From positions 38,192,001 through 38,256,000 of the forward strand of contig NC_083417.1 in the NCBI RefSeq assembly GCF_020745735.1: a stretch of DNA of 64,000 bases, written 5' to 3'. A program made the position numbers and the translations under genes. Source of the stretch: Hemiscyllium ocellatum (taxonomy: Eukaryota). The notes beneath the pieces are model-generated. The model was not told the DNA's origin. It did not search any database and saw only the letters and a program-made list of their open reading frames with translations. How positions within the stretch are numbered: the stretch's first letter is position 1; each line of letters begins with the position of its first letter. Positions 17,105 to 58,839 of this stretch are shown here, piece by piece.

Positions 17105-17180
17105 CTGAAAAATGTGTTGCTGGAAAAGCGCAGCAGGTCAGGCAGCATCCAAGGAGCAGGAGAATCGACGTTTCGGGCAA
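17105..17180 (-). mobile_element. PLE terminal fragment
   Basis: aaaatgtgttgctggaaaagcgcagcaggtcaggcagcatcc..gacgtttcgggc matches the PLE arm. Confidence 0.7.
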
Positions 17181-19055
17181 AAGCAGACCTTGAAATATAT
17201 CGCACATGTATATATGTCATATTTCATAGTTTGTGCCATTCTTTGCTAAGTTGAAACACAATCTGCACAAGATTTCTACCTCAGTAAGACTAAATTGCTC
17301 AATGTCAGTTTCCATTTGAAATTGGCAGAGAAATCACACACAATGAAAATTGATCAAAACTGACCATGGGACATCAGCAGCAAACCGGAGACTGTAATTG
17401 GGTAGCTCATGCAGCTTATGGGTTAGAGGGTTTGAAATTTTAGTTAGCTTGGCCCTGGAGGTTTGCGAGAGGATATTGCAGACACAAGGCATGGAAAGGC
17501 CTATTGAATCTGAAGCAGCACCAGCCTAGAGAATTTCTCTGTGAACAGGACAACGTCTGCTTCACCCAGTTTTACAGATATTAAAATCCCAAAAGAAAAA
17601 TTCCTCCCCTGTTTTTGTGGTTACCCTGCAATCCATATAAAAGTCCTAAATTAGCCATTAAAGTTCCAGAACAGATAGACATGCATAAAGTGTGCAGCTG
17701 ACAATCATTTTGCAGCCGTGTTCAAAATGAGCACCAAGACCTAAATCTTGAACATTCAAGGCATTTGGCTGGTTACTAGGACACTAAGAAGTCATTGTGC
17801 TCTTCTAAGGATCTCTGGGTATAAAAAATTGCTGCTGGATATCTGTGCACAGATATCCATCTTTACTGTCCTCTTTAAAATTGTCAGTATATTGCAACAT
17901 AGATATTTTTTTCTGTTGTTATTTTAGCATTAGTTTCTTTTCTCCTTGCTGCTTTCAAACGAACAGACTTGTACCTTTAGGTGGGTTTTCCACAAAGAAA
18001 GAGTCATGAGGTCATTCTTGTTTGTGTTTTGTATGCCGAAAAGCAAGATGGCAGAACAGACTGATGTCTGGGCACAGTATGTCTTCATTAGCATAAAAAA
18101 ACTGCCATTTCCCCCTTTTTGTTTGTACTTTGCCTGAATATTATTTTAGTAGATTTCAGCTATGCTGCAGCACTGTAGAAGACCCATTTTTAAAAAGTGG
18201 ATTATCTGTGATCATCCTATTTAAAAGAGAGAGACTCTAGATAAGATAGGTGTCCTGAAATTTATCAACAATATTAACTGTTTAGATTGTTAGCATATCA
18301 CATATTTAAACATAGTCTGGGTGTTGTACTTAATGATATTATGTACTTTACATACGCATAGCTGATTGACTGAACACACTACACTGATGTCAATGCACCA
18401 AGGGTGTTTTAGAGGTTAGGTGGACACCTTTATTTTGGAATGTCACATATTATGACATCATGTAATATCTTAAGGTACACACGCATTAACATAACCCTGA
18501 CCTTATGTTTCTTACCAGCAGGGACTGCTGGCACTTTCTAGAAGTATTCAGTTCAGAGGGTGCCCCAGCATTGTTGTCAGGTTGGCAGGTGGGAGGGTGA
18601 TTTTGATCGTAGAATTGGAAAGGTGGCTAGTGGTCCCTGAGAACAACCGACAAGCTGAAAACAGGCTTCCATGTGCAACCTGAAAGATTTCATTACCTTT
18701 GGAAAATCATTGCTAATTGCTTAACAACATCAATTGGCTTTCACTACTGCCTACTAGGTTACCATCAGCACTTTGAACGTGCCCCTGGACAGTGTGGGAG
18801 GTACTGAGATTGTCCAGTCAAATGTTAATCCCTTGTATCCAATCCTATACCCAAAGATCTGATAAAATTTCTTTTCATGTTGCTTCTATAATCCTGACAA
18901 GGACACAAAAAGAAGAATTATGTTTTTCAGGGCTGATGAGCTTTACTCATCAAGCACATTACTTTTGTACTGATAATATAAATACACAGAAGAAACTTTT
19001 ATCTTGAGCTGCACACCTGTCCAAGGTACATACCTGTGCGTTTAATTCTCCCAAA

Positions 19056-19140
19056 TTAATTCAGTCGAACATTTGGGTTTTTATGATTGGCATTTTTCAG
19101 TCTTTCCTTTCCATCATTTGAGATGTCATTCACCAGAATC
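19056..19140 (-). CDS. Terminal LRR exon ILVNDISNDGKERLKNANHKNPNVRLN-stop
   Basis: Acceptor cttcctcttttag|; phase 2 completes TGG (W) from the previous exon; TAA at 19056-19058. Confidence 0.8.
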
Positions 19141-22100
19141 CTAAAAGAGGAAGACACCAAATGATTCTAAAAAGTAAGGATCAAAAGTTTTCAGTTCTTC
19201 AATGAGTAAAAGGGCCGAACACTAGGATAATGAAATGAAAGATCATTTTGTAAAGGCTGTTTTTTTCTCTGTCGTTCTTTCTTCATCCACAGGGAAGAAT
19301 TATGTACTTTTTTTTATTTTGTTCTTGTACTTGCTTGGATGCAATATAGAAAAGCAAATGAAGTGGGAAATCTCGTGTATAAAATGGTGCACACTTCATT
19401 TTCTTTTTGGCTTAAGTGCAGTCACAAAAAAACTCTGCTTTAAATGTGACCAGAACATGCATTTTTTAAAAAAACTACTTCCATTCCAAGTGGCAACTGT
19501 AACATCTTTTAACTTGTTACAACAAACACTATAAATGATACATGATTTCTTCTGACGCTGCAAAAAAAGTCATGAGACACTGTGTAAATGTCAGTATAAT
19601 TATTATATACTAGATGTTTTGAGGCGATTCTGAAGTAACTATTTCAAAGAATAAATGTGTTCTCCTGTTGATACCTGAAATAATTCCGCAGAGGCTGATC
19701 TTCTATCACCATTCACACTTTAGTTACATGTAGAAAGTTCTTGACACTGAGCCAGTTCAGAGTGAACAAGACTCCTGTTCTTATCTGTAAGCTAGGGCTC
19801 CCTGATTGGACATGATCAACAGCCCCAAACAGAAACTCGTATTCTATGATGCCTTTCTGGTGTTACATTCACTACAATACCCATCGTGAGCAGTTCTGTT
19901 TAACACTGTGTTATTGCAAAGTGGTTTTTTCAACACAGACTGAAATTAACTTTTATTTATTTTTAACTAGAACTAATTATAAATATTAAGTTATTTTGCC
20001 AGTTAAGTAAAATAAACATACCTATTATATCTTACATTTCTCTTTTAACTCAGTAGCATTTTAAAAAGGAACTTTAATTCCTCATCACAATGTGAATCTC
20101 GTTCTTAATAAAACAAAGGTCAAATTTTAAAATTTGTCTGTTATTTTTGCCTCGCTTTCCAGTGGGATCACAGCATAGACACACCGATAAACAGAAACAT
20201 TAGCATAGGAGTTGACATTTAGTCCACTGAGGTTATATCACCATTCACTGAACTTGTGACCGATCTGTGAACTAACTACATTTACCTGCCTGCATTCCGT
20301 ATTCTTTGGTGAATGAAAATTGATTACTCTCAGTTTTGAAATTAACATTTAATCCAGTATCGGTTACTTTTTGTGAAAGAAAGAGAGGGTGAAACCTCTA
20401 GCACCTTTTGCATGAAGAAATGTTTCCTAATTTCACTCCTGAAAAATTGTGCCTACCTTTTTTTTTACTATGGTCCTAGATGAATACAACATAACTAGTG
20501 AAGATACTTTCTCTCAATCTATTTTACCAGTTTTTCTTAATACCTTGAAAACTTCAGTCAAATCACTCTTAAATATTCCAAATTCTAGGGAATACAACAT
20601 AAATTTATGTCATTTCACCAAAAATTTACTCTTGATGTCCAGGTATTATTCAGAAACAGCGAGAATGCACTGAACCAAGACCAATACCATATATTCACCT
20701 AGGGTGTGGGGCTCAGAACTGCTTTCAGTGGTCTAACCAGGATATGTATAGCTATCTTTCACCCTCTTGCACTCTGTTCCAGTAGAAATAAGACCGTATT
20801 AACCCTTTTAGCTATTTTCTGAAATGGGTTATATCTCTACATTCCGCACCCCATTTCATCAGGTCTCTTTGGATGTCCGAGAGTTTTTAGCTTTTCACAA
20901 GCTCTGTTTTATTCTTTTACATCTGACAATACTGAAATCCGTTTGCCACCATTTTGCTAATCCACCTAAATGATCAATATTTCTTTTGCATTTTCATTTA
21001 CACTGATTACAATTCTACAATTTTTGTTTCATCATCAAGATTGAAGAAGAAGCTTCAAAATACAATCTTCTAAGAAAATGCCAGCCTTCTATCTATGACT
21101 GTAATCAACTAAAAATTTTCAAAAAAAGAACATTTTAATAAATGGACAATAAAACAAAATTCTTACCACAACTCTTCAAGTGTGTCATTCACTTCTAAAG
21201 CACTTCTAAAATAATCGCTGCCTTTCTCACTGATTCCATTGTCTCCGAGTCTACAAACAAATATTCTCCATTGTATTAATGAGCACTCACAAAGTACAGC
21301 AATATGTACAATGAAATCCCTTAAATATGAAAATGAATGAATCACAAATACATATAACAACATGAAAATAACAGAGCACTTTTAAAGGAGCCATTCTCTT
21401 AAAAATGAATAATGACCTGCCTCCAGCCAAATTAATCCTATGTGGGAAATCAGATGGGGCATTTGCTGAACCACCACTAACTGAGGCTTTTAACTGGGAA
21501 ACTGATACCCATGTAAGCCTCTCATAGCACCACTGCTGGTATTCACCTAGTGGTGAGGCTAGGTGGAGTGGTGCAGAGGGAGATCTGACCACGTTCAGAG
21601 CCCACCGAATGAACCTTAACCGGGTGTGTATGCGTGTGTGTGTCCATCCTTCCTCATTGTACTAACTCAAAGGACCAAGCATCACGACTCAGTACTCCAT
21701 TGAGAGACTCATCTCTGTCCTATTTGCCAATCCTTCTCCCATGCAGCCCACCACCTCCTTGGCCTGTGCCTAGTGAGTACCTGAAGCAGCAAATATTAGC
21801 TCCCTTGTGCCATTTAATAATTAGCGCTGCTGGCTTCTGGAGGGCAAGCAGTTCTTGCTGGGTGGGAAGTCTGCCCTTTGGGTCCATGATTCTGGGAAAG
21901 GCCCACCACTGCCCAGTTAAATGACTGATCAGATTTAACAACAAAGATGGGACAGATGGTTTGCGCCATGTTTCCAGCTCGCAGTTGGCATTCCCAATGC
22001 CTCTGTCCAATGTAGCCAAAGCTCACTGTAAACATCAGCCAGGCTCAGCCCATGAGCACACAGACAAGTGCTAAACAACCAGGCAATAAGAAATGTGAGT

Positions 22101-25100
22101 AAAATCAAACTTAAAAGCTCACCTGAAAATAGGTGAACCTGGGAGAGATTGGGATTGGAAAAAACATTCTTCTGTGAGTATACATTTAAGCACTTACCTT
22201 AGTTCAACCAAGCTGCGATTTTTTTTCATTGCTTCTGCCATATACATTGCACCTTCATCCCCGATTTTGTTAAATTGCAAGCTGAAACAGGACACACATA
22301 CATTTAATTTCCCTTCAATAATGAGAACAGCCCTCATGGCACCAAACTAACTCAATTCATTAATATTTTGAGCACTTTGGGAAAAAAAGGAAGCTCATTA
22401 CACTCCTAAGTTCAATCTTCAACAGATACTAAGTTAGCTCATTTAACTTGAGGTGGTTATGGAGCATTGGTTCATAGCCTGTAGGTGAAAGAGTGATAAT
22501 GAAATTGAACCAGGTTTTCTAGTTTATGAGCTAGTGACTTCTACACTGCCACCAATGATGAGGAGGTAAGAACAGCATCAGCTTCAGGTATAGTTGTAAT
22601 AATGCCTGTGAATATTAGAGATTCATGGATGAGGAAATGCATCCATAGCATGATGGAACCATCTTGTGCTTTCAGAAAGGGAGGGGGAAATGGGGATTAA
22701 GAAAAAGGAAAGTTGAATTCTTGAGGGATAACGGTGCAGTGCTTTGGAACATCAAGCGCTCTGCCATTCATTTGTAGAGTGCAGGACCACAAGTACATCG
22801 TCTCATATGGTGGGAACCTTTCTCTGGCCGAGCAAAATGAAGACCATGAATAAAGAGAAAAAAGCTCCAGAATTCCTCAGGTGGGAATGTTCTCATTAAT
22901 TTGTAAGGTAGTCTTATTTGCATGGATCAGGTGTAAGGCTGTTTTTGAAAAGTTTCTCCATTGTTGACAGTAACTTTAGTGCTCATTTTCCCTTTGTAAT
23001 GGAAATTTCCCAATGCCATTTGCTACTGCACCTGGCAATTAGTTCTATAGACAAGGGTGCTAATTTGAGCTACTATTGGGGTCCATAGTCAATCCTGTGG
23101 AAGCCAATATACCAGCATTCCATGGACCAGCTATTATCAATACACAGTCACATTGCAGCATTGTAGTGTGAGCTCCTAGCTTAAGGAAAGCCAATCAACT
23201 GTTCTAATAATTACTACTTTTAACTTAGCAAAGGACATAACTTCCTCTGAGGTATTGAGGAAATGGGTGGTGACAGACCATGTCTTCCAGTGGGTTCAGG
23301 CCCTATTTTTAAATAAACACATTTAGGGAACATTTCAAATATTAATAATTTAATAATGTAATTCTGTCTCTAGTTATAGTTGGGAGATACAGTTACTTTT
23401 ATCTTGGGTTTATTAAATAATGAAACACACTAGTTAATTTGTCAACACTCCAGGAAGTAGAGTATTGAGAATTCCTCTTCGTCAAGATAAAGATCCACTA
23501 TGGACTTAAATTGGGAACCATGAACAGTGCTGTCATGAAATTTAGCAATATCCACGGGTAGTGCACACAAGATTTGAGGAAACAATACCCGAAAACTCGC
23601 AACGTTGTGTTCATCTCCAGGGCTTCAGCAATCGAACGGGCACCTTTACCTCGGACAGAATTTGCCCTTAATCTAGTGAAATCAGAGAGATTTTGTTAAA
23701 ATAAACAAAGTAAAACCGTCAGTCATCATAACAGCAGTTAATTTTGTTTATAAATTCTCCTGCAAGTTTGACAAACATTCGATATTGCTAAGTTGAATGC
23801 ATACCCCAACGTTTTCAGACTCCTGTTTGTTTTCAATGCATCAGCTATTTGAGCTGCTCCTTTTTCCTGTATGGAGTTGTGCTTCAACCTGTGAAGATTC
23901 CAGATATTCAGACAGTATAACATTTGTATCATTTGCCTGGATCTGAAGCTAGCAATACACAAATATCCATGGACACTGTAGTCCATCAGTTCACTGATAG
24001 CATCTGATTTACTTATAACTGATTTGGAAATTTCCCAATTAACTTAGGACGCATGGCATACAGGGACAATATTTATTGCAGTTAAACAGTGAAATGCAAC
24101 CTCTTACAGTATAAAACACATCAGAAACATTTATTTTCATGTGCTAAACAGAGTTACTTAATTTAATGTTGCATTTATTACACTGCTTTTAACTTGAATC
24201 AGAAACACAATGGTTAGATTAGATTAGATTAGTTACAGTGTGGAAACAGGCCCTTCGGCCCAACAAGTCCACACCGACCCGCCGAAGCGCAACCCACCCA
24301 GACCCATTCCCCTACCTTTACCCCTTCACCTAACACTACGGGCAATTTAGCATGGTAGGAAGAAACCGGAGCACCCAGAGGAAACCCACACAGACACGGG
24401 GAGAATGTGCAAACTCCACACAGACAGTTGCCTGAGGCAGGAATTGAACCCAGGTCTCTGGCACTGTGAGGCAGCAGTGCTAACCACTGTGCCACCGTGC
24501 CGTGGTGTAAATACATTTTGGAGTTACTTAATTTTGAGAATCAAGATTATTATTTACAACCAGCTAAAACTAATGATATGATATATTCGAAAAAATAAGC
24601 AAGACAGGTCATCGGCTTCTATTACAAAAATCAATTAGAGTCATAGTCATAGAGATGTACAGCTTCGGTCCAACTCATCCATGCCAACCAGATGTCCCAA
24701 CCCAATCTAGTCCTATCTTCCCGTACCTGGCCGATATCCCTCCAAACCCCTCCTATTCATATACCCATCCAGATGCCTTTTAAATGCTGCAATTGTACCA
24801 GCCTCCACCACTTCCTCTGGCAGCTCATTCCATACACATACCACCCTCTGCATGAAAACATTGCCCTTTAGGTCTCTTTTATATCTTTCCCGTCTCACCC
24901 TAAACCTATGCCCTCTAGTTATGGACTCCCCTACCTCAGGGAAAAGACTTTGTCTATTTATCCTATCCATGCCCCTCATGATTTTGTAAACCTCTATAAA
25001 GGTAACCACCCCAGCCTCCAATGCTCCAGGGAAAACAGCCCCAGCCTGTTCAGTCTCTCTCTCTATAGCTCAAATCCTCCAACCCTGTCAACACCATTGT

Positions 25101-28100
25101 AAATCTTTTCTGAACCCTTTCAAGTTTCACAACATCTTTCCGATAGGAAGGAGACCAGATTTGCATGCAACATTCCATCAGTGGCCTAACCAATGTCCTG
25201 TACAGCCGCAACATGACCTCCCAACTCCTGTACTAAATACTCTGACCAATAAAGAAAAGCACACCAAACGTCTTCTTCACTATCCTATCTACCTATGATT
25301 CCACTTTCAAGGAGCTATGAACCTGTACTCTAAGGTCTCTTTGTTCAGTAGCACTCCCAAGGATCTTAACATTAAGTGTCTAGGTTCTACTAAGATTTGC
25401 TTTCCCAAAATGCAGCACCTCACATTTATCTAAATTAAACTCCATCTGCCACTTCTCAACCCATTGGCCCATCTGATCAAGATCCCGTTGTAAGCTGAGG
25501 TAATCTTCTTCGTTATGCACTACACCTCCAATTTTGGTGTCATCTGCAAACTTACTAACTATACCTCTTATGCTCACATCCAAATCATTTATATGTATGA
25601 TGAAAAGTAGTAGACCCAGCACCGATCTTTGTGGCACTCCACTGGTCACAGGCCTCCAGTCTAAAAAACAACCCTCCACCACCACCCTCTGTTTTCTACA
25701 TTTGAGCCAGTACTGAATTGAAATGACTAGTTCTCCATGTATTCCGTGAGATCTAACCTTGCTAACCAATCTCCCATGGGGGCCCTTGTCGAATGCCTTA
25801 CTGAAGTCCAAATAGATTACACCTACCGCTCTGCAATTGTCAATCCTCTTTTTTACTTCTTCAAAAATCTCAATCAAGTTTATGAGACATGATTTCCCAC
25901 GCACAAAGCCATGTTGACTATCCCTAATTGCCTTTCCAAATATGTGTACGTCCTGTCCCTCAGGATTCCCTCCAACAACTTGCCCACCACTGATGTCAGG
26001 CTCACGGGTCTATAGTTCCCTGGCTTGTCCTTACCACCTTTCTTAAACAGTGGCACCACGTTAGCCAACCTCCAGTCTTCCGGCATCTCACCTGCGACTA
26101 TCGATGATGCAAGTATCTCAGCAAGAGGCCCAGCAATCACTTCTCCAGCTTCCCACAGAGTTCTAGGGTACACATGATCAGGTCCAGGGGATTTATCCAC
26201 TTTTACATGTTTCTAGATATCCACCACTTCCTCCTCTGTAATATGGACACTTTTCAAGATATCACAATCTATTTCCCCACATTCTATATCTTCCATGTCC
26301 TTCTCCACAGTAAATACTAATGCAAAATACTCGCTAAGTATCTCCCCCATCTCCTCCACACAAAGGATGCTTTACTGATCTTTGAGAGGCCCTATTCTCT
26401 CCCTAGTTACCCTTTTGTCCTTAATGTATTTGTAAAAACCTTTTGGATTCACCTTAACCCTATTTGCCAAAGTTATCTCATGTCCCCTTTTTGCCCTCCT
26501 GATTTCCCTCTTAAGTATACTCCTATTGCCTTTATATTCTTCTAAGGATTCACTCGATCTATCCTGTCTATACCGGACATATGTTTCCTTCTTATCTCTT
26601 TCCTCACTACGTTCTTGGGTCCCATCCCCCATCCTTACTAGTTTAAATCCTCCTGAGCAGCTCTAGCAAATCTCCCTGCAAGTATGTTAGTCCCCTTCCA
26701 ATTTATGTGCAATGTGTCCTTCTTACACAGGTCACTTCTACCCCAAAAGAACTTCCAATGATCCAAAAATGTGAATCCTTCTCCCATACACCAGCTCCTC
26801 AGCCATGCATTCATCTGCTCCATCCTTCTATTCCTGCCCTCGCTAGCTCATAGCATCGGGAGTAATCCAGATATTACTACTTTCGAGGACCTCCTTTTTA
26901 AATTTCTGTCTAATTCTCTGTAATCTCTCTTCAGAGTCTCAATCCTTTCCCTTCCTATGTTGTTGGTTCCAATGTGTACAATGACCTCCTGCTGGCCCCT
27001 CTCCCCCGCGATCACATTCTGCACCCTCTCTGAGACATCCTTGATCATGACATCAGGGAAACAACACACCATTCTGATTTTTTGCTGCTGGCCACAAAAT
27101 GTCTGTTTGTACCTCGGACTAGAGAGTCCCCCTAACACAAATAATTGCGTGGAGCCCATCATGCTTTAAGATTACTGTCCTGACGTATTCATTGATTTGT
27201 TTAACATTTGTTTAAAGATTTTGTTTTAAACAGTGAATGCTGATGTTACTGTAAGAAAACTCGTTTGGAAAAGTTAGCATTGCAAAATACCTACATATGT
27301 GATATAATAATCACTGAAAATCCAATGATTAAATATTACTTCTATGCTAACAGATTTTTAAAAAATCATTTACTTCAATAAGTCCTCCCAATTTCTGTAT
27401 TGGCATTGGCTATAGTATAATCTAATAAAACAAAAATAACAATAGAAAAGTGTACTAATCATAACTTTTAACAATTTAATCTTTAAGATATACAATGTAA
27501 GTCCAGGCTTCTATAAAGGACAAAGTTAAGAACCTGAAAACAAAACTGTTGATCAACACAATGATAAAACAGTTCAAGGAGTTTAGAATTAACTTTGTTA
27601 TTCTTTGGCTGTGAATTTTAACTCTTAAAAAGTCAGTTTTTAACGAACAACATTTTGTTTAGTTTCTATCTTCACCGTGAACCAAAATTTGCAATTGATA
27701 TTTGATTTTATCCACTCTGCCATTTTTAAGATGTGAAACAGATGAAGGCAATTTACCTTAAAATTTCTATTCTGCACATCTTACTTCTGAGTGCATTTGC
27801 AATGATCTCTGCTCCTTCATCTTCCAGCATGTTTCCCTCTAAACTGTGGATGAAAGGAAAATTATCATTGTTTTGTTCACTTGGTATTTGTGAATATTCT
27901 TCAGCTAATGAAATATTCATTCCTGTAGCTGCACTGGGTGAACAATTCAATTTTAGGTAGCTCATTTCTGCTCATGGCATGGCCTCCTATGCTCCTCATT
28001 CACCCAGGACTGACCCCTGGCTTTATGGTAAGGATAGAGGGGGTGATATGCCAGATCATGAGGCTGCAGGTTGTAGATGAGTGCAACTGTGCTCCTGCTG

Positions 28101-31100
28101 GTGGCGCATAGTGACTCATGGATGTCCAGTCTTGAGTTGTAGATCACTTTGAAACCTATTCCATTCCCCACAGCAAAATGGAGAGCAACCTCAATATGAA
28201 AACAGGGCTGTGTCACCTGAAGGACTAGGTGGTGTTCATTCCTACTGGTATTGAATGTATGTACCTGCTACAGGTAGATTGGTGGGGATGAGGTCAAGTA
28301 TGTTGTAAGGCCAGTTTTACAGTGGTGGGGTGGGGTGATGGGGTGGTGTTAAGGGAGGGGCAAAGAATGGTAGTTGGCAGTGAGATTTCATAAGGACCAG
28401 AGTAAATGTTAAGGGGCAACTCCCTCCTGACTGTGTTGCCATCTCTGGAAATGGTGATGAGTGACTGCTGATGGAAGATTTGGTGACGTCTGTAGGATTT
28501 TATCAAGCTGGTCTGTGGAGCAACCCACAATTTTTACACAAGCTCACTCCTAAGATTAGTAAAGAGGACTTTGCAGGGTTGACTGGGATGGGTGCATTCT
28601 TGTTGTTTTTGGCAATGCCATAATGTCACTCCTTTTATTATATTTTGTCGCAGTTAGATACAACTGAGTGACTTGCTAGATCACTTCAAGAGGGGAGTAA
28701 AGACTCAATCACATTGTTCAGAGTCAATCACATTACTATGAGTCTGGAGTCACATGTAGACCAGACAAAACAAGGAATGCAGATTTATTTTCCTAAAGGG
28801 CATTAATGAGTCAGACTTGTTTTCACAGATTTGTTTCCACAAAGCTTTTCACTGTGTCTCGGTACACGTGACAATATATTCAATTCAATTCAATTGTTTT
28901 TATGACATTCGACAATGGTTTTATGGTGACTAAAAGACAAGTTTCTAATTCCAGATTTATTAATTGAACTAATAATTCACCATGTAACATGGTGGGATTC
29001 AAACTTGTGTCCACCAGCACTAGCCTAGGCCAACAGCACTATGACAATACTAACATTAGGACATATGAACTGGGCCACTGACTCCCTGTTGACCTGTAGG
29101 AAGAGATACAGAGAATTGACCTAAGGCTGGGTTATGAAATTGGGATTTTGAGGAGGTAACAGGCAATGGGGTTTTAGATCAGAATTCCAAAATATCGGGA
29201 TAGCACGATTGCTAGTTATGGGTGGAATGCTCATGAAGGTAGAGTTTCCAGGCAGAATTATAGGGAGTTAGAGAAATTAGAAACAATAAAATGATTGGCA
29301 AATTCAAATTAGAAGGATGAGAATTAATTTGAGGCACTGCTGGATCCAGAGCCAACATGGGAAGAAGGAGTATTGGATGATGGATGAATGCAGGCAGGGG
29401 AGTTTGCCGAGTTGAAATTTAATGAATTATGAAGCCTACCAGGAGAACATTGGAACAGCCAAACCTATGTGACAGGGGCATGGATGGAAGTTTTAGCAAT
29501 GGCTGTGTTTGCTGATACCAGCATATGTGAACCATGCACTGCTTTAAATTACGTTGAGGTTGGGGTTTGTTGGGGTGGGAAGGAGGGAAGACTGGGAGGA
29601 GCATAGAATAAGAGTGTCTGCCCGCCCACCAAAACTGTCCCATGCACCCATTCCCCACCACTGAAGCCCTATTCAAATTCTTGTGCACAATACTTTTGCA
29701 TGTGATGTCACACATAAACTACATCTATGTGATGACACTGTATTTGGAACTGTGCACATGCACATTTCTAAATGAGCTCACATGTGTAGTTGCCCTCAGT
29801 TGCCAGTGTCAGCAAACATTGCCTTAAAGTTAATAACATTGAAAGTTTTGTATTTAATAAGATAGTATTCGTGACTTCAAGATGTTCCAAGCACTTTGCA
29901 CCCAATAAAATATGTTTCATGTGTAGTCACTTGTGATGTGAAAATCTGCCAAACAACTTGAACACAGCAATAAGGTTACAGGCCAGATAATCTTTCTTAA
30001 TGATGTAACTTGAGGGATAACTATTGACAAGATAGCTTATTTGAATATTAACATGAAATCTTCTAAAACTTCCTGAGAGAGTACACAGGCCTTAGTTTTA
30101 TGCCGAATCCAAATGATAGTGCACTATCTGCTAGCACGGCAGAAAGTCAGCCTGAAGTATGTGCTCAAGGCTAATCTAGAATTGACTGACTCAGAGATGA
30201 TAATGTTACACAGCAATAGCTGACATCACAATGAGTGGCCTGCACCACTGTGGCACATAAAGAATCTGCCTCAAGACACACATTTTCAGAGTTTGCTCAC
30301 AGTCACTTGATAGTCCTATACCAACCGAAGTTGTTTATGGGACCTGCAGGTAACTATGTTAGATCATTTTTTTCTAAACTATGTAAATACCAGATTAATA
30401 CAATCAAGTATTTTCATTTTTTGTTACTGTTTAAGAAACTTCAATATCAAATGTCTGAATTGTAACAAAAATAGATATTTCCGGTTTCTAGCTTCCATGG
30501 ATTTTTAAAATCTTTAAAATATTAGCCACAATATAAATGTATCAATTGCAGAACAACTCAATTTGAAAACAAAAAAGCAACCATAATATTTAATGTATGC
30601 ATATGCCAAGGTTGTTGACAGCATCATTGTTGCTGGAAAAGCACAGCAGGTCAGGCAGCATCTGACGAGCAGGAGAACCAACATTTCAGGCAAGAGTCCT
30701 TCATCAGGAATTGAGGGGGTGGAGAGATAAATGAGAGGGAGGGGATAGGTCTGGGGGGAAGGTAGCTGAGAGTGCAGTAGGTCGATGGAGGTGGGGGAGA
30801 AGGTGATAGGTGAGAGAGGAGAGTAGAGTGGATAGGTGGGAAGGAAGGTGGACAGGTCGTGAGGGCAGTGTCAAGTTGGAAGGTTGGAACTGGGATGAGG
30901 TGGAAGAAGGGTAAGTGAGGAAATTGGTGAAGTCCACATTGATGCCATGTGGTTGGAGGGTCCCAAAGTGGACACATTCTCCTAGCATCATTTAAATGCA
31001 ATGCATGACACTTTAGTCAATTAATTTAATATTAAACATAAATCTACTAAAGTCTTATTGCTGTACCTTTAAAAGATAAAATGACCAAGTCACCAAAATT

Positions 31101-43100: not shown

Positions 43101-46100
43101 CTTACTATGTCCATCTAATATATTAGATAAGCTTGAAATTTTTAAAATGTATTTCAGAGGATACCCATTAGTGGAATTCTTTCAGTAGAAATAGCAACGT
43201 GAAATGTGTGACAGTTCAGCATCTGCACAGCAATTTAGATTGTGATGTCAGTAAGAAAATAATTACTTATTGATTCAACATTCTACTCAGTCCTGCTCTG
43301 CACCCAAGATACACTACACCTAAAGTCTGTTTAGAAAATAAAATTTTTCATCTTTTTACCCTGAAGATCCAAAGCTGGCTTTATCAAAGTCTGCGTTTTA
43401 TGGATATTAGGAGTGCAATTTGGTGATCATAATAAAAGCCATATGTTGATGAGTAGTACTATGACAATGAGATGGAAAAGAACAGCTTTGTCAGCGGTTA
43501 GAAAAAAAAGTCATTTTTAACTGTTGGGCAACATAGTTAGCACTGCTGCGTCACAGTGCCAGAGAACCAGGCTTGATTCCAGCCTTGGGTGAGTGTCTGT
43601 GTGGGGTTTGTACATTCTCCCTGTATCTGAGTGGGTTTCTGCTGTTTGCTCTGGTTTCCTTCCACAGATGTGCAGGTAAGATGGACTGGTCATGCTAAAT
43701 TGGCCTATTGTGTCGAGGGATGTCCAGGTTAAGTGGATTAGCCATGGGAATTGCATGGTTACAGGACTAGGGTAGGCAGGTGGGTCTAGGTGGGGTGTTC
43801 TGAATATCGGTGCAGGCATGATGGGCCAAATGGCCTCTTGCACAGGGTAGGGATTCTATGTCTCTGTATTTAAATATTTAGGCAGGAAACAGAAAGGGTT
43901 ATTTTGGCTTGTATGTAAGATCCACTACCAAACCCCGAAAAGGATTTGTGATAATAGAGGCTCCAAAGAGTAATTTTCCACTCTACACTGATACCATTGA
44001 GAGGAAGTCAATTTCATGCAGATTTCATTGATAAATCCTCTGGAATACATACAAAAAACAACTGGGAGTTGGCGTAAATAGCAAAAATGTTAATTTCCAT
44101 ATTTTGACCAAGGAACAAAAGAATCCACTTTTAAACTTCCACATAAATTAGATTGTTTACTCGACATGATGGAAGGTTATTGCTTTGTCATCCTGTAATT
44201 TTCAAATGAATTTCTGTGAAAGTCTGGCAGTATTTCTATTCAACTATCCCTCTGAAATGTGAAAAACCTTCATAAATCCTCTGCAATTTAAAAGAACACG
44301 TAAGCAGAGAACAATCTGAATGATCAAACAAATCTGTGACAAAATTAAAATCTGGCAAAACCTTTTATAATGAATCAATGTTTACACTTGAAGGAACCAA
44401 ATAATGTCTGTTACTTATAGTGATCCATCTGTTGTATGGCTCTCTTATACAAATTCAAGCCAAGACCCTCAAAGTGGAAAAAATAGAATTCATGGCATAT
44501 TAGAATTGAGAAGTGTTTCATGCCATTTACTAGATCTCATTTTCTTTTAACTACTCACCCTTGATTGTCAAACTAACAACTTTTTGTAGAGGTATCTTTA
44601 AAGCTTCATGAATAACTTTGCAGACATAGGAAGCCCCATCATCTGTTTGAATGCCTTTGATGATAAGGAACGAAAGCAGATTAAATGTCCCATCTTCATT
44701 TTGTTGAGGTGATCCTGTAACCGCTCTTGATGTAACATCAAGTTGGTTTTCACTGTCTTGTGAGCCACTTTTTAACCAAGAGATAGAATGATTTTTTGGA
44801 TAAAAGTTTTTCATCTCACAAATGATTACTTTGTCTTCACCAGGTTCAATTACAATGTTTTCAGTGTTCACTGAAACTGTAGGAGGTGCTACAAAGACAC
44901 AAGGAAAAAGGATAAATATTATATTATTTTTATTAGCATTATTGGCATTACTTTAAAATACATCATAACAATGTTAGTCAATGTGGTCCCTCAAACCTAT
45001 TCTTCTATTTAATTAGTTCAGTGTTGGTCTGTGATTTAACTCCCAATTTGTTCTTTGTCTCATATACTTCAATAATATTGCTCAGTGAAAGTCCAGCTAT
45101 CTCAGATTTAAAATTATTATTTTACTGAGTGCAAAAGTGAGTTAAAAATTCAATCATAATTTGTGTGAAGTAGGATTTCCTAATGGACTTCTGAACAATC
45201 TGGCTCTGATTTTGGATAATGCTCCCTCTCCCATCAGTGGAAATGACCTCTCACCAGTGGTCATATCAATGACTATGACATCTTGAATTTTTGATGTTTG
45301 TATAATCTTTTGTAATTTATTGCTTGCAGCTCAGATCTTCTGACAAATACATACAATACTCTCCCAAGACATCTGATTTTCACTTACAGCAGATACTAAT
45401 GATTATGGATCACTTTGGGTTTAATTAAACTGTAGGTTCAACACCCTTTCTTTACATATTTCAGTATTTAATAGCAAGTGGAGAAGAAATTCTGTTTAAT
45501 TTGTTCAACATTTCTGATGGAAGTTATTGACCTCCAGGTGAACTCCATTTCTCCCTTCACCAATACAGTCAAACTTGTTATTTCCAACATTTTCTATTTC
45601 TACTTCAAACTTCTAGCAGCTTCAGTACTTTCCTTTTGGCTTAGTAAAAATCATTCTCAGGTTGACAATTTTGAACTTGGATGGTCAAATGTCAGGAATT
45701 TAGGTTTCAGTATTAAAGCTGTGTTCTGGAAATGATGACAAAGCCAGGAATATTGTATTCTGGAAAACAGGTCACTTTGACTTGTTGATTTATGTCCACA
45801 AGGTATGAAACTGCACTGTTCAGTTATTTGAAGGAAGGATCTACAATTGGCCACCAAGGATAGTAAATGCTTCACCCCAACAGTTCAGTTTGCTGACTGT
45901 AAACAAAATCAATTCAACTCATATGATTGCTTCTGTGTTTTTTCTAACTTGCAAGACAGATTAGAGTAATTTTACAGATATTGCACCGTAGCTAAATAAA
46001 ATATCTACTCTATGTCTTAAAGAAGAAACACAATGGTCTGTATTTTGTGGCATCAGCAAAGCACCAGCATTCACCTTTGACTTTCATAAAAGTTATACAA

Positions 46101-49100
46101 AAAAATCTACCAATTTCTGTGGCAATTTCCTTTTCCAAGGTCAGTTTTATTGCTGGTACCAAGCCAAAGTGTCTCAAAGCATCAAGCAACAGTGGATGTG
46201 ATCGATTTGGATTTCCAGAAGGCCTTTGACAAGGTGCTGCATGGGAGGCTGCTAAATAAGGTAAGGACCAAAGGTGTTGGAGACAAGATCCTGCCATGGG
46301 AAGAGGATTGGCTGACTGGCAAACATTAAAGAGTGGAGATAAAAGGGTCTTTTCCAGCAAGCCAGGCAGTGATTATTCGAGTTCTGCAGAGGTCAATGTT
46401 GGTATCACAACCATTCATGTTATCCATTAATGATCTGGCTGAAGAAACTGAGGGCATTGTTGCTTAGTTTGCAAATGACACAAAGATAGTTGGAGGGACA
46501 GGCAGTGTTGAGGAAGCAGGGAGGCTGCAGAAAGAGTTGGACAGGCTAGGAGAGTGGGCAAAGAAGTGGCAGATGGAATACAATGTGGGAAAGTATGAGA
46601 TTATGCACATTGATAAGAATAGAGATGTGGACTACAAACAATTTGGAGATGTCTATCAGGTCACCCCTCAGCCTCTGTCATTCCAGGGAAAACAATCTCC
46701 TCATAACAAAAACCCTCCAGACGAGGCAACATCCTGAATAAACCTTTTCTGCACCCTGTCCAAAGCATCCACGTCCTTCTGATTGTGTGGTGATCAGAAC
46801 TGCATGCAATATTCCAAATGTGGCCGAACTACAGTTTTGTACAGCTGCAACATAAATTGCCAACTTGAATATTCGATGCCCCGGCCAATGAAGGCAAGCA
46901 TGTTGTATGTGTTTTGACCACCTTATCAACCTGTGTTGTCACTTTTAGGGATCTGTGGACCTGTACATCTGAATCTCTCTGTATGTCAATGCTCCTAAGG
47001 ATTCTGTCCTTTATTGCATAATTCACAGCTGAATTTGATCTTCCAAAATGCATTAACTTACATTTGTTTGGATTAAACTCCATCTGCCATTTCTCTGCCC
47101 AAATCTGCAATCTATCTATATCCCACTGTATCCTTTGACAATCTTATTCACGGTCTGCAACTCTAAAATTTTGGTATCAATAAACAATGTAGACAATAGG
47201 TGCAGGAGTAGGCTATTCGGCCCTTCGAGCCAGCACCACCATTCATAATGATCATGGCTGATCATCCACAATCAGTATCCTGTTCCTGCCTTATCCCCAT
47301 AACCCTGGATTTCACTATCTTTGAGAGCTCTCTTTCTTGAAAGTATCCAGAGACTTGCCCTCCACTGCCTTCTGGGGCAGAGTATTCTGGGTGAAGAAGT
47401 TTCTCCTCAACTCTGTTCTAAACGGCCTACCCCTTACTTTTAAATTGTGTCCTCTGGTTCTGGAAACATGCTGCCTGCCTCCAGAGTGTCCAATCCTTTA
47501 ATAATCTTATACAGCTCAATCAGATCCTCTCTCATCCTTCTAAACTCAAGTGTATACAAGCCCAGTCACTCCAATCTTTCTACATATGATAGTCCCACCA
47601 TTCTGGGAATTGACCTCGTGAACCTACGCTGCACTCCCTCAATAGCCAGAATTTCCTTCCTCAAATTTGGAGACCAAATCTGCACACAATACTCCAGGTG
47701 CAGTCTCACCAGGGCCCTGTAAAGCTGTAGAAGGACCTCTTTACTCCTATACTCAATTCCTCTTGTTATAACAGTCAGCATGCCATTAGCTTTCTTCACT
47801 CCCAGCTGTACCTGCATGCTTGCTTTCATTGACTAATGAATAAGAACACCTAGGTCTTGTTTTACTTCTCCTTTACCGAACTTGACTCCATTTAGATAGT
47901 AATCTGCCTTTCTGTTCTTGCCACCAAAGTGGATAACCACTGATTTATCCACATTAAACTGCACCTGCCATGCATCTGTCCACTCACCTAGCCTGTCCAA
48001 GTCACCCTGTATTCTCATAATATCCTCCTCACATTGCACCCTGCCACCCAGCTTTGTGTCATCAGCAAATTTGCTAATATTACTTTTAATATATTGTAAA
48101 CAGCCGCAATCCCAGCACCGAACCTTGTGGTGCCCCACTGGTCACCGCCGGTCATTCTGAAAAGGACCCGTTTATCACTGCTCTTTGCTTCCTGTCAGCC
48201 AGTCAATTTTCAATCCAAGTCAGTATTTTGCCCCCCATTACCATGTGTCCTAATTTTGCTCACTAATCTCCCATGTGGGACTTTATCAAAGGTTATCTGA
48301 AAGTCCAGGTACACTACAACTACTGGGTCTTCCTTGTCCATCTTCATAGTTACATTCTCAAAAAATTCTGGAAGATTAGTCAAGCACGATTTCCCCTTCG
48401 TAAATCCATGCTGACTCTGACCTATCCTGTTACTGCTATCCAAATGAGTTGTTATTTCATCTTTTATAATTGACTCCAACATCTTTCCCACCACTGATGT
48501 CAGTCTATAATTCCCTGTTTTCTCTCTCCCTCCTGTCTTAAAAAGTGGGACAACATTTCCAACCTTCCAATCCACAGGAATTGATCCTGAATCTACAGAA
48601 CATTGGAAAATGATTCCCAATGTGTCCATGATTTCTAGTTAAATACCCTGGGATACAGACCATCAGGTCCCGGGAACTTATGAGCCTTCAGACCTAACAG
48701 TCGATCCAACACCATTTCCCGCCTAATATAAATATAAATGCCCTTCAGTTCATCCATTATCCTAGGTTCTGCAGCCACCAATACATCTGGGAGATTGCTT
48801 GTGGCTTGTGCCAGTGAAGACAGATCCAAAGAAGCTATTCAACTCTTCTGCCATTTCCTTGTTTCCCAGAATAAATCACCCATTTCTGTCTTCAAGGGAC
48901 CAATTTTAGTCTTAAACTTTTTTTTTCTAAAAAAGCTTTTACTATCCTCCTTTATGTTTTTGGCCAGTTTGCCTTCGTACCTCATTTTTTTTCTCCACGT
49001 ATTGCCTTTTTAGTTATCCTCTGTTGCTCTTTAAAAAAAGTTTTCCAGTCCTTTAGCTTCCCGCTCATCTTTGCTATGTTATACTTCTTCTCTTTTACCT

Positions 49101-52100: not shown

Positions 52101-54547
52101 TGTACCTTCTCCACTGAGGTAACTTGAAGTGTTTTCAATTTGAATTTGGAAGTGCTTTTCTTTCATCACTTCTTACTGACTGTTACATTAAAAACTGTGA
52201 ATGGGTCTCAACAAAATCATGGTCAAGATTTTTTAGTTTGATCAGGTGACGTCGAATTATTTGTCACTTTACATCAACCTGCTTCCAACTGACAGTATTC
52301 ACATCTGTATAATTTTCTCATCCTACATTTTGAAGTTCTTACCATTATGAATGCTTATCCACAGTAAGTAAAGGAAAACCTCCAGAGGTCCTAAAGGTTT
52401 ACACTTCAGGCATTATTTTTCACTCACCTGTTACCGACAGAGTAACTTTCCCTGTGGCTTTGTCGGAAAATACTGCCACTGTGCAGGAGTATGACCCAAT
52501 GTCGTAAATCGTAACATTTTTTAGGAGTAAAGAAGCATTTGCTTTGCTTATTTCATTTATAGAGAGACTTGATCCTGGTCTATAGCTTTCATATTCTCCA
52601 AAGTCAAACAAGCAAACAGTTTTTTCCTCACTTCCCACTCTATGGTTCCACTCAATGACAATGTATCTCAAATCAACTGCAACAGCGCTTGAAAACGTGC
52701 AGCCAAGGAGGACATCTTCCCCAAAGGTGGCACTGACAGCTGGCGGGAGCATCACCTCCAGTGAAACTGCAATAAAAATAATAGACATCAAAAGAAAGTA
52801 GGGTCAATACATAGTTTATTAATCATTAATTTTATTTGTCAGCATTCAAAGGAGGGACAAATGGCTAGCAGTTTCAGGACCCAGGAGCTGGGAAACTCAC
52901 TGGGTCATGTTTCATTCTTATAGTTGCTACACTTTGGAGAAACACTTGCTTGGCTGTAAGGCTTATTACATAGAGACCTGGGAAAAAGGCTGCATTAATA
53001 CAAATCCAATGTCACCACCACCCCCCCCAACCCCCTCCTCCACCCCACCCACACCTCCAGCCAGATGAGCAGAGGCATTAAGTAGTGATATGGGTGGGAG
53101 AGAAGGAAGGGAAGGGGAGAGGCGGGCAAGTTTGGCTGCCATTGGGTTGAGGGGACCATGCTGTCAGCTGCCATTGCAAAATCAGACAGAAGCTTGTTTC
53201 GGGTTGAGCTGGACACATACAATTTGCCTGTTTTGGCTCGAACTTGCACTTTTAAAAATCTGTCTCTTTGGTGAAAGTCACTTGCTACATTAGAAAGCAG
53301 CAAAGTGACACTGCACCTCAAACAAATATATTAAATATGCTCTCCACAGATGGTGCCAGACCTGATGAGCTTTTCCAGCAATTTCTGTTTTTGTTTCTGA
53401 TTTACACCATCCACAGTTCTTTTGATTTTTATTTAATATTAAATCTGCTAATTTGCAGGGCTCTTCATTAAGGTGAATTTGCAGGGAGCTGTATGGACAA
53501 GACAGGTCAAATTGTGATCTTTCCTCACTGTAACAATTCTATGATTACAGGTGACTTTAATGCATTCAGTTCTCAATATCCGCGAGGGATTGGGGCATGA
53601 ACTTCCCATGTATAACAATAAGCACGATACCACTCCTATGTATCTCAAAGGACCGCAATGTTTACTGAGGCAAACTGGGTGAGACAATGGGATAAAAAGA
53701 GGTCTGGGGTAGACTTCACGAGTACGAGGGTAGCAGATAGCAAGGTGTGAGCACACCACAGGAAATTTTGAAGAGCTGAAATACATATTTGAATACTGCA
53801 GTGACTCTTTTGGAGTTTAATAGAAAATTACTTAAATTTACTGAGTGCTGTCGCTTCAGGATAATATTTCTTGTCAGATTCATAACAGAGAGAGTTTGAA
53901 GCTTGCGCAAGAAAGAAACCAATTCAAGGCAGACATGTCTGATGGATGAAGGGGAAATCCAAAACTGACAAATTACAGTACAACAGCCAGAACTCTTTCA
54001 CTTGTTTGTAAGTCATTCTGTAGGTCCTTAGCTAGGGTGATGTGCTTCCTCTCCAAAAGGTGAATTTTTAACCAAACAACAGTAGTTACAGAGTCACTGT
54101 ATGGCTAGCTGTTATTCCCAGATTTTTACTGAGTTCAAACTTCACCATCTGCTATAGTAATATCTAAAGCAATGTCCACATCTCAGGAGGCTGTCCTGGA
54201 TTACTTGTCCAAAGACGCTAAGACTATGCCACTGTTTCCTTATTTTATCTCCTGAAGAAAAATAACTTGAGACCACTGTAGTCATTAGATATTTACTTGC
54301 TTTGAGTAATGTGCAACATACCAAATATCATATTTATTGCTTCACTAAAAGAACTTTCATCAAAATATATATTTCCACTTTCTAAGCCTGAAATGAAGGC
54401 CTATACTTCACGTCACCCCTTTCACATCCGTAAAGCTACGAAGAAACGACTTCAGTGTCTATAGTAACAGAGAGGTAAAGCAATTCTCCACTTACCCGCT
54501 AAGGGGACAAAACAAAATATAATCAATTCTACTAAAAAGCAATTCAT
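19056..54547 (-). CDS. Spliced model: signal peptide-IgV-IgC1-IgC1-CARD-NACHT-LRR (12 exons, 3831 nt, 1276 aa). One internal TAG, so possibly a null allele or young pseudogene; may instead be two tandem genes
   Basis: Exons 54496-54547, 52428-52766, 44559-44888, 39317-39751, 34159-34596, 31153-32881, 27757-27843, 23805-23888, 23589-23672, 22198-22281, 21167-21250 and 19056-19140. All introns are GT..AG with matching phases (1,1,1,1,1 then 2) and the total length is divisible by 3. The 39317-to-34596 join is inferred. Confidence 0.6.
19705..19885 (-). mobile_element. Solo-LTR-like repeat (same family as 39961-40149)
   Basis: Shared ctccctgattgg / cagcccc / cttgacactga motifs in the opposite orientation. 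Confidence 0.45.
21167..21250 (-). CDS. LRR exon LGDNGISEKGSDYFRSALEVNDTLEELW
   Basis: 84 nt, phase 2-2, ttgtag| ... |gtaaga. Confidence 0.9.
22198..22281 (-). CDS. LRR exon LQFNKIGDEGAMYMAEAMKKNRSLVELR
   Basis: 84 nt, phase 2-2, gtttcag| ... |gtaagt. Confidence 0.9.
23589..23672 (-). CDS. LRR exon LRANSVRGKGARSIAEALEMNTTLRVFG
   Basis: 84 nt, phase 2-2, cactag| ... |gtattg. Not in the ORF track. Confidence 0.88.
23805..23888 (-). CDS. LRR exon LKHNSIQEKGAAQIADALKTNRSLKTLG
   Basis: 84 nt, phase 2-2, cacag| ... |gtatgc. Confidence 0.9.
24237..24503 (-). mobile_element. HE1-type V-SINE
   Basis: Homologous to 496-797. Confidence 0.88.
24640..27170 (-). mobile_element. Internally deleted CR1 LINE (ORF1 esterase plus ORF2 pieces)
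   Basis: VIVHIGTNNIG and VVISGLLP (esterase); DKSPGPD, YRPVSLTS, SGVPQRSVLG, SKFADDTK. Confidence 0.9.
27757..27843 (-). CDS. LRR exon SLEGNMLEDEGAEIIANALRSKMCRIEILR
   Basis: 87 nt, phase 2-2, ccacag| ... |gtaaat; ribonuclease-inhibitor-like LRR. Confidence 0.88.
27960..28620 (-). mobile_element. Degenerate LINE ORF2 fragment
   Basis: QSWVNEEHRRPCHEQ resembles the PWFNEECRRAC region of CR1-group ORF2 (recalled pattern, not searched). Confidence 0.5.
30301..30378 (-). pseudogene. Possible decayed LRR exon (LEKNDLT*...TIK*L)
   Basis: Acceptor tttacatag| and donor |gtgagc, 78 nt, phase 2-2, LxxNxL start, two in-frame stops. Confidence 0.3.
30625..30990 (-). mobile_element. PLE 3' fragment
   Basis: Same terminal arm and purine-rich 3' region as 11319-12861. 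Confidence 0.7.
31153..32881 (-). CDS. NLR NACHT-HD1-WHD-HD2 exon, interrupted by in-frame TAG at 32154-32156
   Basis: Walker A GVAGIGKS, Walker B LFLFDGLDE, ILITSRP, LCYVPAFC, FFHLTHQEFFAALY. ORFs 32154..32945 and 31146..32150 share one frame across the TAG. Acceptor aattacag| and donor AG|gtatta. Confidence 0.93.
33455..33580 (+). mobile_element. PLE terminal fragment with hammerhead-like core
   Basis: ctgatgaagggcttgtgctcgaaacgtcgaa..gatgctgcctaacctgctgtgc. Confidence 0.7.
34159..34596 (-). CDS. CARD (death-fold) exon with no start codon of its own
   Basis: Acceptor ctgaacag|GT GCT and donor GAA G|gtaggc, 438 nt, phase 1-1. Sequence RRTVVNYISPNILPLLNLLVNKKIISEDDHNAIK..GRTLLDMLSHRGQKSCANFLNVL. 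An in-frame TGA lies just upstream of the acceptor and the first Met is inside the domain. Confidence 0.85.
36617..36865 (-). mobile_element. HE1-type V-SINE, 5'-truncated
   Basis: Tail and V-domain present; tRNA head missing. Confidence 0.75.
36866..37480 (+). mobile_element. CR1 3' fragment
   Basis: ERVFPLVGESLTRGHNLRV..RRNFFS. Confidence 0.75.
38490..39130 (+). mobile_element. L2 LINE 3' fragment
   Basis: gctgctgaaacagtcatccatgcttttgttacctctag resembles the AETxIHAFVTS motif of L2 ORF2. Confidence 0.6.
39317..39751 (-). CDS. Atypical Ig C1-set exon 2 (about 35 aa longer, F-strand Cys replaced by Phe)
   Basis: Acceptor ttttttcag| and donor |gtgagt, 435 nt, phase 1-1. Motifs LACAVLWFKPKAVKVSW, GAYSLVSQL, YSFEVQHDAL. 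Confidence 0.85.
39961..40149 (+). mobile_element. Solo-LTR-like repeat
   Basis: TG..CA ends, internal AATAAA, second copy near 19705-19885; no TSD seen. Confidence 0.45.
40340..40970 (+). mobile_element. CR1 3' fragment containing a 29-bp perfect inverted repeat
   Basis: CFVQFWNPQYRRDAIVLERLQRRFTR. Confidence 0.75.
41162..41365 (+). mobile_element. Miniature fold-back PLE insertion
   Basis: Inverted termini; TSD TAACA(C/G)TAGAATCAGA at 41146-41161 and 41366-41381. Confidence 0.72.
43525..43860 (+). mobile_element. HE1-type V-SINE, diverged
   Basis: gttagcactgctgcgtcacagtgcc, then V-domain, then atgggccaaatggcct tail. Confidence 0.78.
44559..44888 (-). CDS. Ig C1-set domain exon 1
   Basis: Acceptor gtctttgtag| and donor |gtgagt, 330 nt, phase 1-1. 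Motifs ICEMKNFYPKNHSISW, QNEDGTFNLLSFL, YVCKVIHEAL. Confidence 0.92.
46130..49800. mobile_element. Cluster of CR1 ORF2 fragments in both orientations (about 46130-46640 +, 46640-49100 -, 49190-49800 +)
   Basis: YLDFQ, SKFADDTKLG, LVRLHLEYCVQIWSP, GKSCLTNL motifs. Confidence 0.85.
50060..50146. repeat. Interrupted (GA)n microsatellite
   Basis: Directly visible; explains the LSLSLS ORFs. Confidence 0.95.
51590..52050 (+). mobile_element. CR1 3' fragment
   Basis: gagggcttgtcatatgaggag..ttcagccagaggttggtgaatct..gggctaaatggcct. Confidence 0.7.
52428..52766 (-). CDS. Ig V-set domain exon (B7-H6/tapasin-related-like)
   Basis: Acceptor ttttattgcag| and donor |gtgagt, 339 nt, phase 1-1. Motifs LGCTF, IEW, NASLLLKNVTIYDIGSYSCTV. 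Confidence 0.92.
54496..54547 (-). CDS. Leader (signal peptide) exon MNCFLVELIIFCFVPLA
   Basis: ATG at 54547-54545, 17 mostly hydrophobic codons plus 1 nt, then a consensus donor G|GTAAGT. Its phase 1 joins the V exon in frame (..VPLA-VSLEV..). Too short for the ORF track. Confidence 0.8.
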
Positions 54548-54635
54548 TGTTCCATGCGTTTCAATTTAAAGCAGAATTATGATAACAATACATAATCAAC
54601 AAGTAAACTACAGCGCAACATCTTAGCCGACAAAT

Positions 54636-58835: not shown

Positions 58836-58839
58836 TAGA

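Follow-up and report, generated by a model that had tools for sequence, protein, structure and literature searches.

A probable 13-exon shark gene joining a B7-H6-like immunoglobulin ectodomain to a CARD-NACHT-LRR tail in a predicted membrane protein

Results

Gene structure

The window analysed in this study is a stretch of 64,000 nucleotides from Hemiscyllium ocellatum (NC_083417.1, positions 38,192,001 to 38,256,000), whose minus strand carries between 54547 and 19056 what is, with high probability, one gene of 13 exons that encodes an immunoglobulin (Ig) part and an NLR part together. The coding sequence comprises 3942 nucleotides or 1313 codons, with AG/GT sites and compatible phases at every exon and with neither a frameshift nor a lost splice site. 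An earlier note on this DNA, made from its letters alone, had proposed an exon-shuffled Ig-NLR hybrid with a product of 1276 amino acids. The hybrid gene is supported by the exon junctions of its orthologues and by a shark-ray comparison of the intron between the two parts, while the product has to be revised, as a transmembrane (TM) exon adds 37 codons to the 1276 and an in-frame TAG interrupts the reading frame at codon 811.

Exon 1 (54496-54547) contains the ATG and the signal peptide in 17 codons plus one nucleotide, ends in a phase-1 donor and aligns to residues 1-24 of the Chiloscyllium plagiosum protein. Exon 2 (52428-52766; AG/GT, phase 1) encodes a B7-H6-like IgV domain (Pfam V-set, E 2e-10) and exon 3 (44559-44888) an extracellular Ig C1-set domain that retains both cysteines (Pfam C1-set, E 1.4e-12). 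These are followed by exon 4 (42760-42870), a TM helix with basic stop-transfer residues, and exon 5 (39317-39751), whose C1-like Ig domain is cytoplasmic, contains an inserted loop and lacks the second cysteine (YSFEVQH; partial Pfam C1-set match). As the earlier note had read them, the leader (ATG 54547), V and two C1 exons all end in phase-1 donors, and the GT donors are present in the sequence. The NLR part starts with exon 6 (34159-34596), which encodes a CARD and a linker (Pfam CARD, E 1.3e-11), and continues with exon 7 (31153-32881), which by Pfam and orthologue alignment encodes the NACHT domain (Walker A GIGKS, Walker B LFLFDGLDE), the helical domains and the first LRR. The TAG at codon 811 (32154-32156) lies inside exon 7. 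Exons 8 (27757-27843), 9 (23805-23888), 10 (23589-23672), 11 (22198-22281) and 12 (21167-21250) each encode an LRR, and exon 13 (19056-19140) encodes the C-terminal cap and a TAA stop. Pfam searches return V-set, C1-set (full for the first domain, partial for the second), CARD, NACHT and NLRC4_HD2.

The CARD exon has its first base at 34596, next to an AG, with an in-frame TGA two codons upstream and without an ATG ahead of the domain, in line with the earlier note. Joining 39317 to 34596 reads in frame as ...ALETK-G-ACEDPGYF..., again as had been claimed. The exon is in phase 1 at both ends, so that skipping it leaves the frame intact. An alternative acceptor for the NACHT exon at 32932, which lies in frame 51 nucleotides further upstream and would add the 17 residues GENASFTMTHYFSLVIT (32882-32932), is unused in all orthologue models, which use 32881. 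A three-codon upstream open reading frame, ATG GAA CAA TGA (54544-54555, minus strand), overlaps the main start; it is present in C. plagiosum and absent from white shark and sawfish, and was therefore set aside.

Transmembrane exon and predicted topology

The earlier note had found no convincing TM exon. By mapping the Narcine bancroftii protein onto the window, we have located one at 42870-42760, between the two C1 exons. It has 111 nucleotides, AG and GT sites and phase 1 at both ends, and it codes for a hydrophobic helix of 21 residues with basic residues after it. This exon is found in every orthologue, being kept in 13 species, and it forms a collinear block in the alignments with sawfish and white shark. 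A strict-threshold hydropathy scan of the window detects no TM segment, and at a looser threshold the true TM exon is one of many candidates. A strongly hydrophobic open reading frame near 5283 was rejected as the TM exon, as it lies about 14 kb past the stop codon and is unused by any orthologue. The position of the TM exon between the C1 exons leaves only V-C1 on the extracellular side and places the second, C1-like domain in the cytoplasm, which corrects the V-C1-C1 ectodomain of the earlier proposal. The product is thus a predicted type I membrane protein with a signal peptide, a V-C1 ectodomain, a TM helix and a cytoplasmic C1-like-CARD-NACHT-LRR tail. Directly past the TM-exon donor (42752-42759, minus strand) the frame of a retained intron would run G-K and then stop. 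C. plagiosum, white shark and sawfish have this immediate stop too (GGT AAA TGA or TAA), and retention of this intron would yield a B7-H6-like membrane protein without a tail.

Orthologues, synteny and isoforms

A whole-database HMMER search with the NACHT segment returns one close relative, XP_069757801 of the electric ray Narcine bancroftii (1168 amino acids, 72% identity). This protein runs from signal peptide, V and C1 through a hydrophobic helix and a C1-like domain to NACHT and LRR, with NACHT beginning about 400 residues in. Searching with the Narcine protein reveals proteins of 1289-1346 amino acids that carry V-set, C1-set, CARD, NACHT and LRR together in 11 further species, three of them rays (Pristis, Mobula and Hemitrygon) and eight of them sharks (Pristiophorus, Carcharodon, Heterodontus, Scyliorhinus, Chiloscyllium, Mustelus, Heptranchias and Rhincodon). 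Cluster look-ups add C. punctatum, S. torazame, Cetorhinus and the nurse-shark protein QTT61908.1. The single-protein combination of V-set, C1-set, CARD and NACHT for which the earlier note had asked a search among chondrichthyans is thus found across sharks and rays. At least 14 elasmobranch species with RefSeq models, named 'NLRC3-like' or 'NOD1-like', use the equivalent of the 39317|34596 junction, and so does the nurse-shark GenBank protein. The latter is deposited as 'natural killer cell cytotoxicity receptor 3 ligand (B7H6) [Ginglymostoma cirratum]', has 1318 amino acids with all of the domains, and matches the C. plagiosum protein end to end at 88% identity, across the TM exon and the ...ETKGACEDPGYF... 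junction as well. It looks transcript-derived, since no genome contig is on record for it. The basking-shark (Cetorhinus) orthologue is named 'PLEKHF1', apparently after a neighbouring gene.

The window product is 97% identical over its full length to XP_043562816 of C. plagiosum, and transferring the exon coordinates of the window to the C. plagiosum locus yields exactly that protein on translation. The two loci are collinear, with about 98% identity in exons and 93-95% in introns. The window differs from C. plagiosum and C. punctatum at sites that these two share, which places it in a lineage just outside them. When the gene is reconstructed by splicing in bamboo shark, white shark and sawfish, all 13 exons reappear at almost the same lengths, and POP4 is the upstream neighbour in all three. 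In the comparison of the window with sawfish, the collinear conserved blocks consist of the 13 exons and one short intronic element only. Within the 4.7-kb intron between the C1-like and CARD exons, no block is conserved in order between shark and ray, which argues that it hides neither a first exon for the NLR part nor a terminal exon for the Ig part.

RefSeq isoforms include forms that skip the CARD exon in Narcine and Pristiophorus, forms that skip LRR exons in Carcharodon and Heptranchias, and N-terminal variants. The CARD-skipping isoforms of the ray and the sawshark join the C1-like exon straight to the NACHT exon. In Mustelus, isoform X5 is without the C1 and TM exons, so that the NLR would follow the signal peptide with no membrane anchor.

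Domain identities

The ectodomain profile matches B7-H6 best among structures in the PDB (E 1.5e-31 over the full V-C1), followed by B7-H3 (E 1e-25), TAPBPR (E 1e-16) and SIRP. A Foldseek search with the ectodomain model returns B7-H6 chains as its top six matches, the first being 3pv6_A, and in the database search the next matches after the gene's own family are turtle NCR3LG1 proteins. These results bear out the earlier comparison with B7-H6, the human protein being the best solved-structure match to the ectodomain. The AlphaFold2 model of the ectodomain is confident for the C1 domain only, with V-domain values of the predicted local distance difference test (pLDDT) below 50, and the B7-H6 assignment therefore leans mainly on the sequence profile.

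In the cytoplasmic C1-like exon the first cysteine and the tryptophan are retained, the second cysteine is missing from all 13 species, and there is a disordered insert; the loss fits a cytosolic domain that would no longer form a disulfide. AlphaFold2 and Foldseek give this domain a beta-sandwich-type fold like that of antibody CL domains, at moderate confidence (pLDDT about 55-70). In sequence it comes closest to the post-membrane C1 modules of the turtle NCR3LG1 models, with E 1e-8 compared to 0.02 for the ectodomain C1, suggesting that post-TM C1-like modules are a feature of non-mammalian B7-H6 homologues. The NLR would accordingly appear to have been added behind one such module of a B7-H6 homologue.

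The CARD is modelled as a helical bundle (pLDDT 80-92), and its nearest solved structures are ICEBERG and NOD1. The NACHT domain (Pfam E 3.5e-33) has Walker motifs GVAGIGKS and LFLFDGLDE that are kept in 13 species. For the NACHT-LRR part the nearest PDB entries are NOD2 (5irl) and then NLRP3, and the nearest NACHT domains outside the family, 37-43% identical, belong to fish and amphibian proteins labelled 'NLRP3/NLRP12/NLRC3-like'. The LRRs, six in all, are of ribonuclease-inhibitor type: there are five LRR exons of 84-87 nucleotides plus the cap, the orthologues score as LRR_6, and ribonuclease inhibitor is among the PDB matches.

Selection and the premature stop

Between bamboo shark and white shark, the ratio of nonsynonymous to synonymous substitution (dN/dS) is 0.20 overall, with 0.19 for V, 0.25 for the extracellular C1, 0.31 for the C1-like exon, 0.23 for CARD, 0.16 for the NACHT exon and 0.10 for the LRRs. 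Between bamboo shark and sawfish, the corresponding values are 0.20, 0.22, 0.27, 0.35, 0.30, 0.13 and 0.16. Constraint thus acts on all parts of the fused product, even on the unusual Ig module in the cytoplasm.

The earlier note had taken the copy in the window to be intact, and it carries one nonsense codon in the NACHT exon. The TAG at 32156-32154 is TAC in C. plagiosum and a tyrosine in all 12 aligned orthologues, and it is the sole lesion. Compared with C. plagiosum, the window has a dN/dS of 0.33 overall and of 0.18 for the part past the stop. With nurse shark and whale shark as outgroups, the window branch has 19 amino-acid changes, mostly conservative, and the Chiloscyllium branch has 14-15. 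A unitary pseudogene would be recognised by a disabling lesion, which is present, and by relaxed constraint, with dN/dS near 1, or multiple lesions, which are absent. Such substitution rates without relaxed constraint suggest that the TAG is very recent, is a segregating allele or, less likely, is a base error. If real, the TAG allele would end the protein just past the nucleotide-binding subdomain, and its transcript would probably be subject to nonsense-mediated decay.

Other features of the window

Upstream of the gene, the last coding exon of POP4 (RNase P/MRP subunit p29) lies at 61853-61620 on the minus strand and ends ...YIYGSKFQLRSSERSAKKFKGKGSIDL. In the intron that separates exon 7 (NACHT) from exon 8 (LRR) lies a collinear conserved non-coding block (30497-30628, minus strand) with stops in all frames, which is 82% identical to white shark and 83% identical over 53 nucleotides to sawfish and may serve as a regulatory element. 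LINE-type retrotransposon fragments that contain reverse-transcriptase open reading frames occur at 24663-27162 (minus), 46696-48629 (minus), 6053-8531 (plus) and 58586-60441, two of them within introns of the gene. Copies of a short interspersed repeat of about 80-200 nucleotides are found at 41161-41366, 30628-30820, 17103-17184, 11321-11523, 5829-6030 and 58258-58448, and the same repeat is also dispersed in the orthologous loci of other species.

Discussion

Our analysis suggests that a single elasmobranch gene combines features of two families. On one side, the NACHT domain with its Walker A and B motifs, the C-terminal LRRs and the CARD adjoining NACHT are those of an NLRC-type protein. 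On the other, the signal peptide, the IgV and IgC1 ectodomain and the single TM helix are those of B7-H6/NCR3LG1. The soluble, cytosolic state that is usual for vertebrate NLRs does not apply, with signal peptide and TM exons lying upstream in the same frame. Several points weigh against this reading. It is unusual for an Ig fold to lie in the reducing cytosol, and the AlphaFold2 model of the C1-like domain is only moderately confident. The TAG allele may give no full-length protein in the sequenced animal. The RefSeq orthologue models are computational, mostly from Gnomon, and searches for short transcript-derived fragments, one using just the CARD exon and one a part of the C. plagiosum protein that spans the junction, were empty under a length filter that left out full-length proteins. 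Finally, the sequences bear on how the protein is built, on its predicted type I topology and on how far it is conserved, while the ligand, the direction of signalling and the partner of the CARD are entirely inferred.

How such a protein may work can be proposed from its parts. The ectodomain is a putative ligand for receptors of the NKp30/NCR3 family on natural killer (NK)-like cells, and the tail would be a membrane-tethered NLR. We speculate that the LRR-NACHT part senses a conserved cytosolic trigger and then undergoes nucleotide-dependent oligomerisation at the membrane. The oligomer would form a CARD platform that recruits a CARD kinase or a caspase, and oligomerisation would also cluster the B7-H6 ectodomains. 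In this way cytosolic danger sensing could be physically coupled to the display of an NK-activating ligand, with the CARD-less splice forms acting as modulators. Eight NCR3 genes have been deposited for the nurse shark, as cited in PMC12227049.

We favour this inside-out coupling because the LRRs are the most constrained part of the protein, pointing to a cytosolic partner, and consider the reverse direction nearly as plausible. Signalling from outside to inside is a serious possibility, to which we would give somewhat less than an even chance. An NKp30-type receptor or another ligand would cluster the tails, and the proximity of CARD and NACHT would start NF-kB or cell-death signalling in the ligand-bearing cell. 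By analogy, the protein would then resemble IL-1R or a TLR in which an NLR replaces the TIR domain. The predicted type I topology is receptor-like, the ectodomain is highly conserved (dN/dS about 0.2), the CARD is conserved as well as alternatively spliced, and the Ig-TM-NACHT protein AjNLRC4 of the sea cucumber is reported as a surface receptor (PMC13133943). However, the strength of constraint on the LRRs (dN/dS 0.10-0.16) suggests that they have their own partner or ligand in the cytosol. To our knowledge, known NLRs are also released from autoinhibition by ligand and not by clustering alone.

Two further explanations concern whether the gene is what it appears to be. It is very unlikely that the locus in the window is a long-dead pseudogene, decaying while its orthologues function. 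A stop at an invariant NACHT-domain tyrosine is what such a copy might show, and no protein from this locus turned up in the protein searches. Nevertheless, it is a single lesion in 3942 nucleotides that are otherwise free of frameshift and splice-site loss, dN/dS remains 0.18 past the stop, the 19 changes on the window branch match the 14-15 on the sister branch and are mostly conservative, and exons are better preserved than introns against C. plagiosum (about 98% versus 93-95%). Least probable of all is that predictors have merged a B7-H6-like Ig gene with a neighbouring CARD-NACHT-LRR gene into a fused protein that does not exist: the mostly Gnomon origin of the supporting proteins, the empty short-fragment searches across the junction and the in-frame stop right after the TM-exon donor in four species, which makes an Ig-only product possible if the intron is retained, would suit it, but the CARD exon has no start codon and an upstream in-frame stop, the Ig part lacks a separate terminal exon, a shark-ray comparison shows no additional conserved exon in the intron, phases and lengths of all 13 exons remain compatible across three distant species, the C1-like module is under purifying selection, the nurse-shark B7H6 of 1318 amino acids deposited by specialists spans every exon, and the annotated CARD-skipping isoforms of ray and sawshark join the C1-like exon to the NACHT exon.

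Taking the locus as one gene with both parts, we next consider what is new in it. The earlier note had suggested, subject to a literature check, that the architecture may be new in vertebrates, a suggestion that does not hold, as the full-length protein is already deposited as B7H6 from the nurse shark and is annotated by RefSeq in many species as NLRC3-like or NOD1-like. These names, and PLEKHF1 once, obscure the architecture. Our literature searches returned no description of a vertebrate Ig-TM-NLR, a paper probably tied to the nurse-shark deposit lying outside their coverage, and a whale-shark survey of NLRs makes no mention of Ig-bearing members. It is thus conceivable, if rather doubtful, that the NLR tail has never been analysed in print and that this gene is the first recognised vertebrate transmembrane NLR, one that predates the shark-ray split and ties a cytosolic danger sensor to an NK-cell ligand. 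Vertebrate NLRs are regarded as strictly cytosolic sensors, and B7-H6 is seen as a signal to NK cells that is induced by stress. In this gene a single polypeptide combines both and is under purifying selection in sharks and rays, so that the gene offers a natural experiment in coupling intracellular sensing to surface signalling and NK recognition.

Comparison with known systems

The nurse-shark B7H6 (QTT61908.1) and the RefSeq NLRC3-like and NOD1-like models represent the same gene as that in the window, with the same 13 exons, junctions and POP4 neighbour; the nurse-shark and C. plagiosum proteins are 88% and 97% identical to the window product over the full length. The window copy differs from these proteins in that it has the TAG at codon 811, and it represents a third lineage outside C. 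plagiosum and C. punctatum.

Human B7-H6 (NCR3LG1; PDB 3pv6, 4zso and 6yjp) resembles the shark protein in its signal peptide, IgV-IgC1 ectodomain and single TM helix, and is its best profile and structural match. The identity is only about 27%, however, and the tails differ, as the shark tail consists of a C1-like Ig module and a full NLR, whereas that of the human protein is short, is related to Gag and contains tyrosine motifs. The turtle NCR3LG1 models (Carettochelys and Pelodiscus) share V-C1-TM and the C1-set modules past the membrane. In contrast to the shark gene, their tails are made of five or six C1 modules in series, with no CARD-NACHT-LRR. The Carettochelys model has 967 amino acids with its TM helix at about residues 262-285, and some of its post-membrane C1 modules are without the second cysteine. 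The tail of B7-H6 thus appears to have been freely swapped in evolution, as turtles have C1-like modules in this place, elasmobranchs an NLR and humans a tail derived from Gag.

On the cytoplasmic side, NOD1, NOD2 and other NLRC-type NLRs likewise run from CARD through NACHT to LRR, and they have in common with the shark protein that both Walker motifs (A and B) are intact, that an HD2 domain is present and that the LRRs are of ribonuclease-inhibitor type on 84-nucleotide exons. Unlike the shark protein, these NLRs are soluble and cytosolic, without a signal peptide or a TM helix. Membrane-anchored NACHT proteins are likewise found in invertebrates, namely AjNLRC4 and AjNLR-new of the sea cucumber, which combine Ig, TM and NACHT, and the TM-NLRs of anthozoans. 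AjNLRC4 has an extracellular Ig domain and is described without CARD and LRR (PMC13133943, PMC8699970), and the anthozoan NLRs have three to five N-terminal TM helices and no Ig domain (PMC5094078). Metazoan NLRs other than these anthozoan forms are stated to be cytosolic (PMC5094078). The membrane NLRs of sea cucumbers and anthozoans presumably arose independently of the shark gene.

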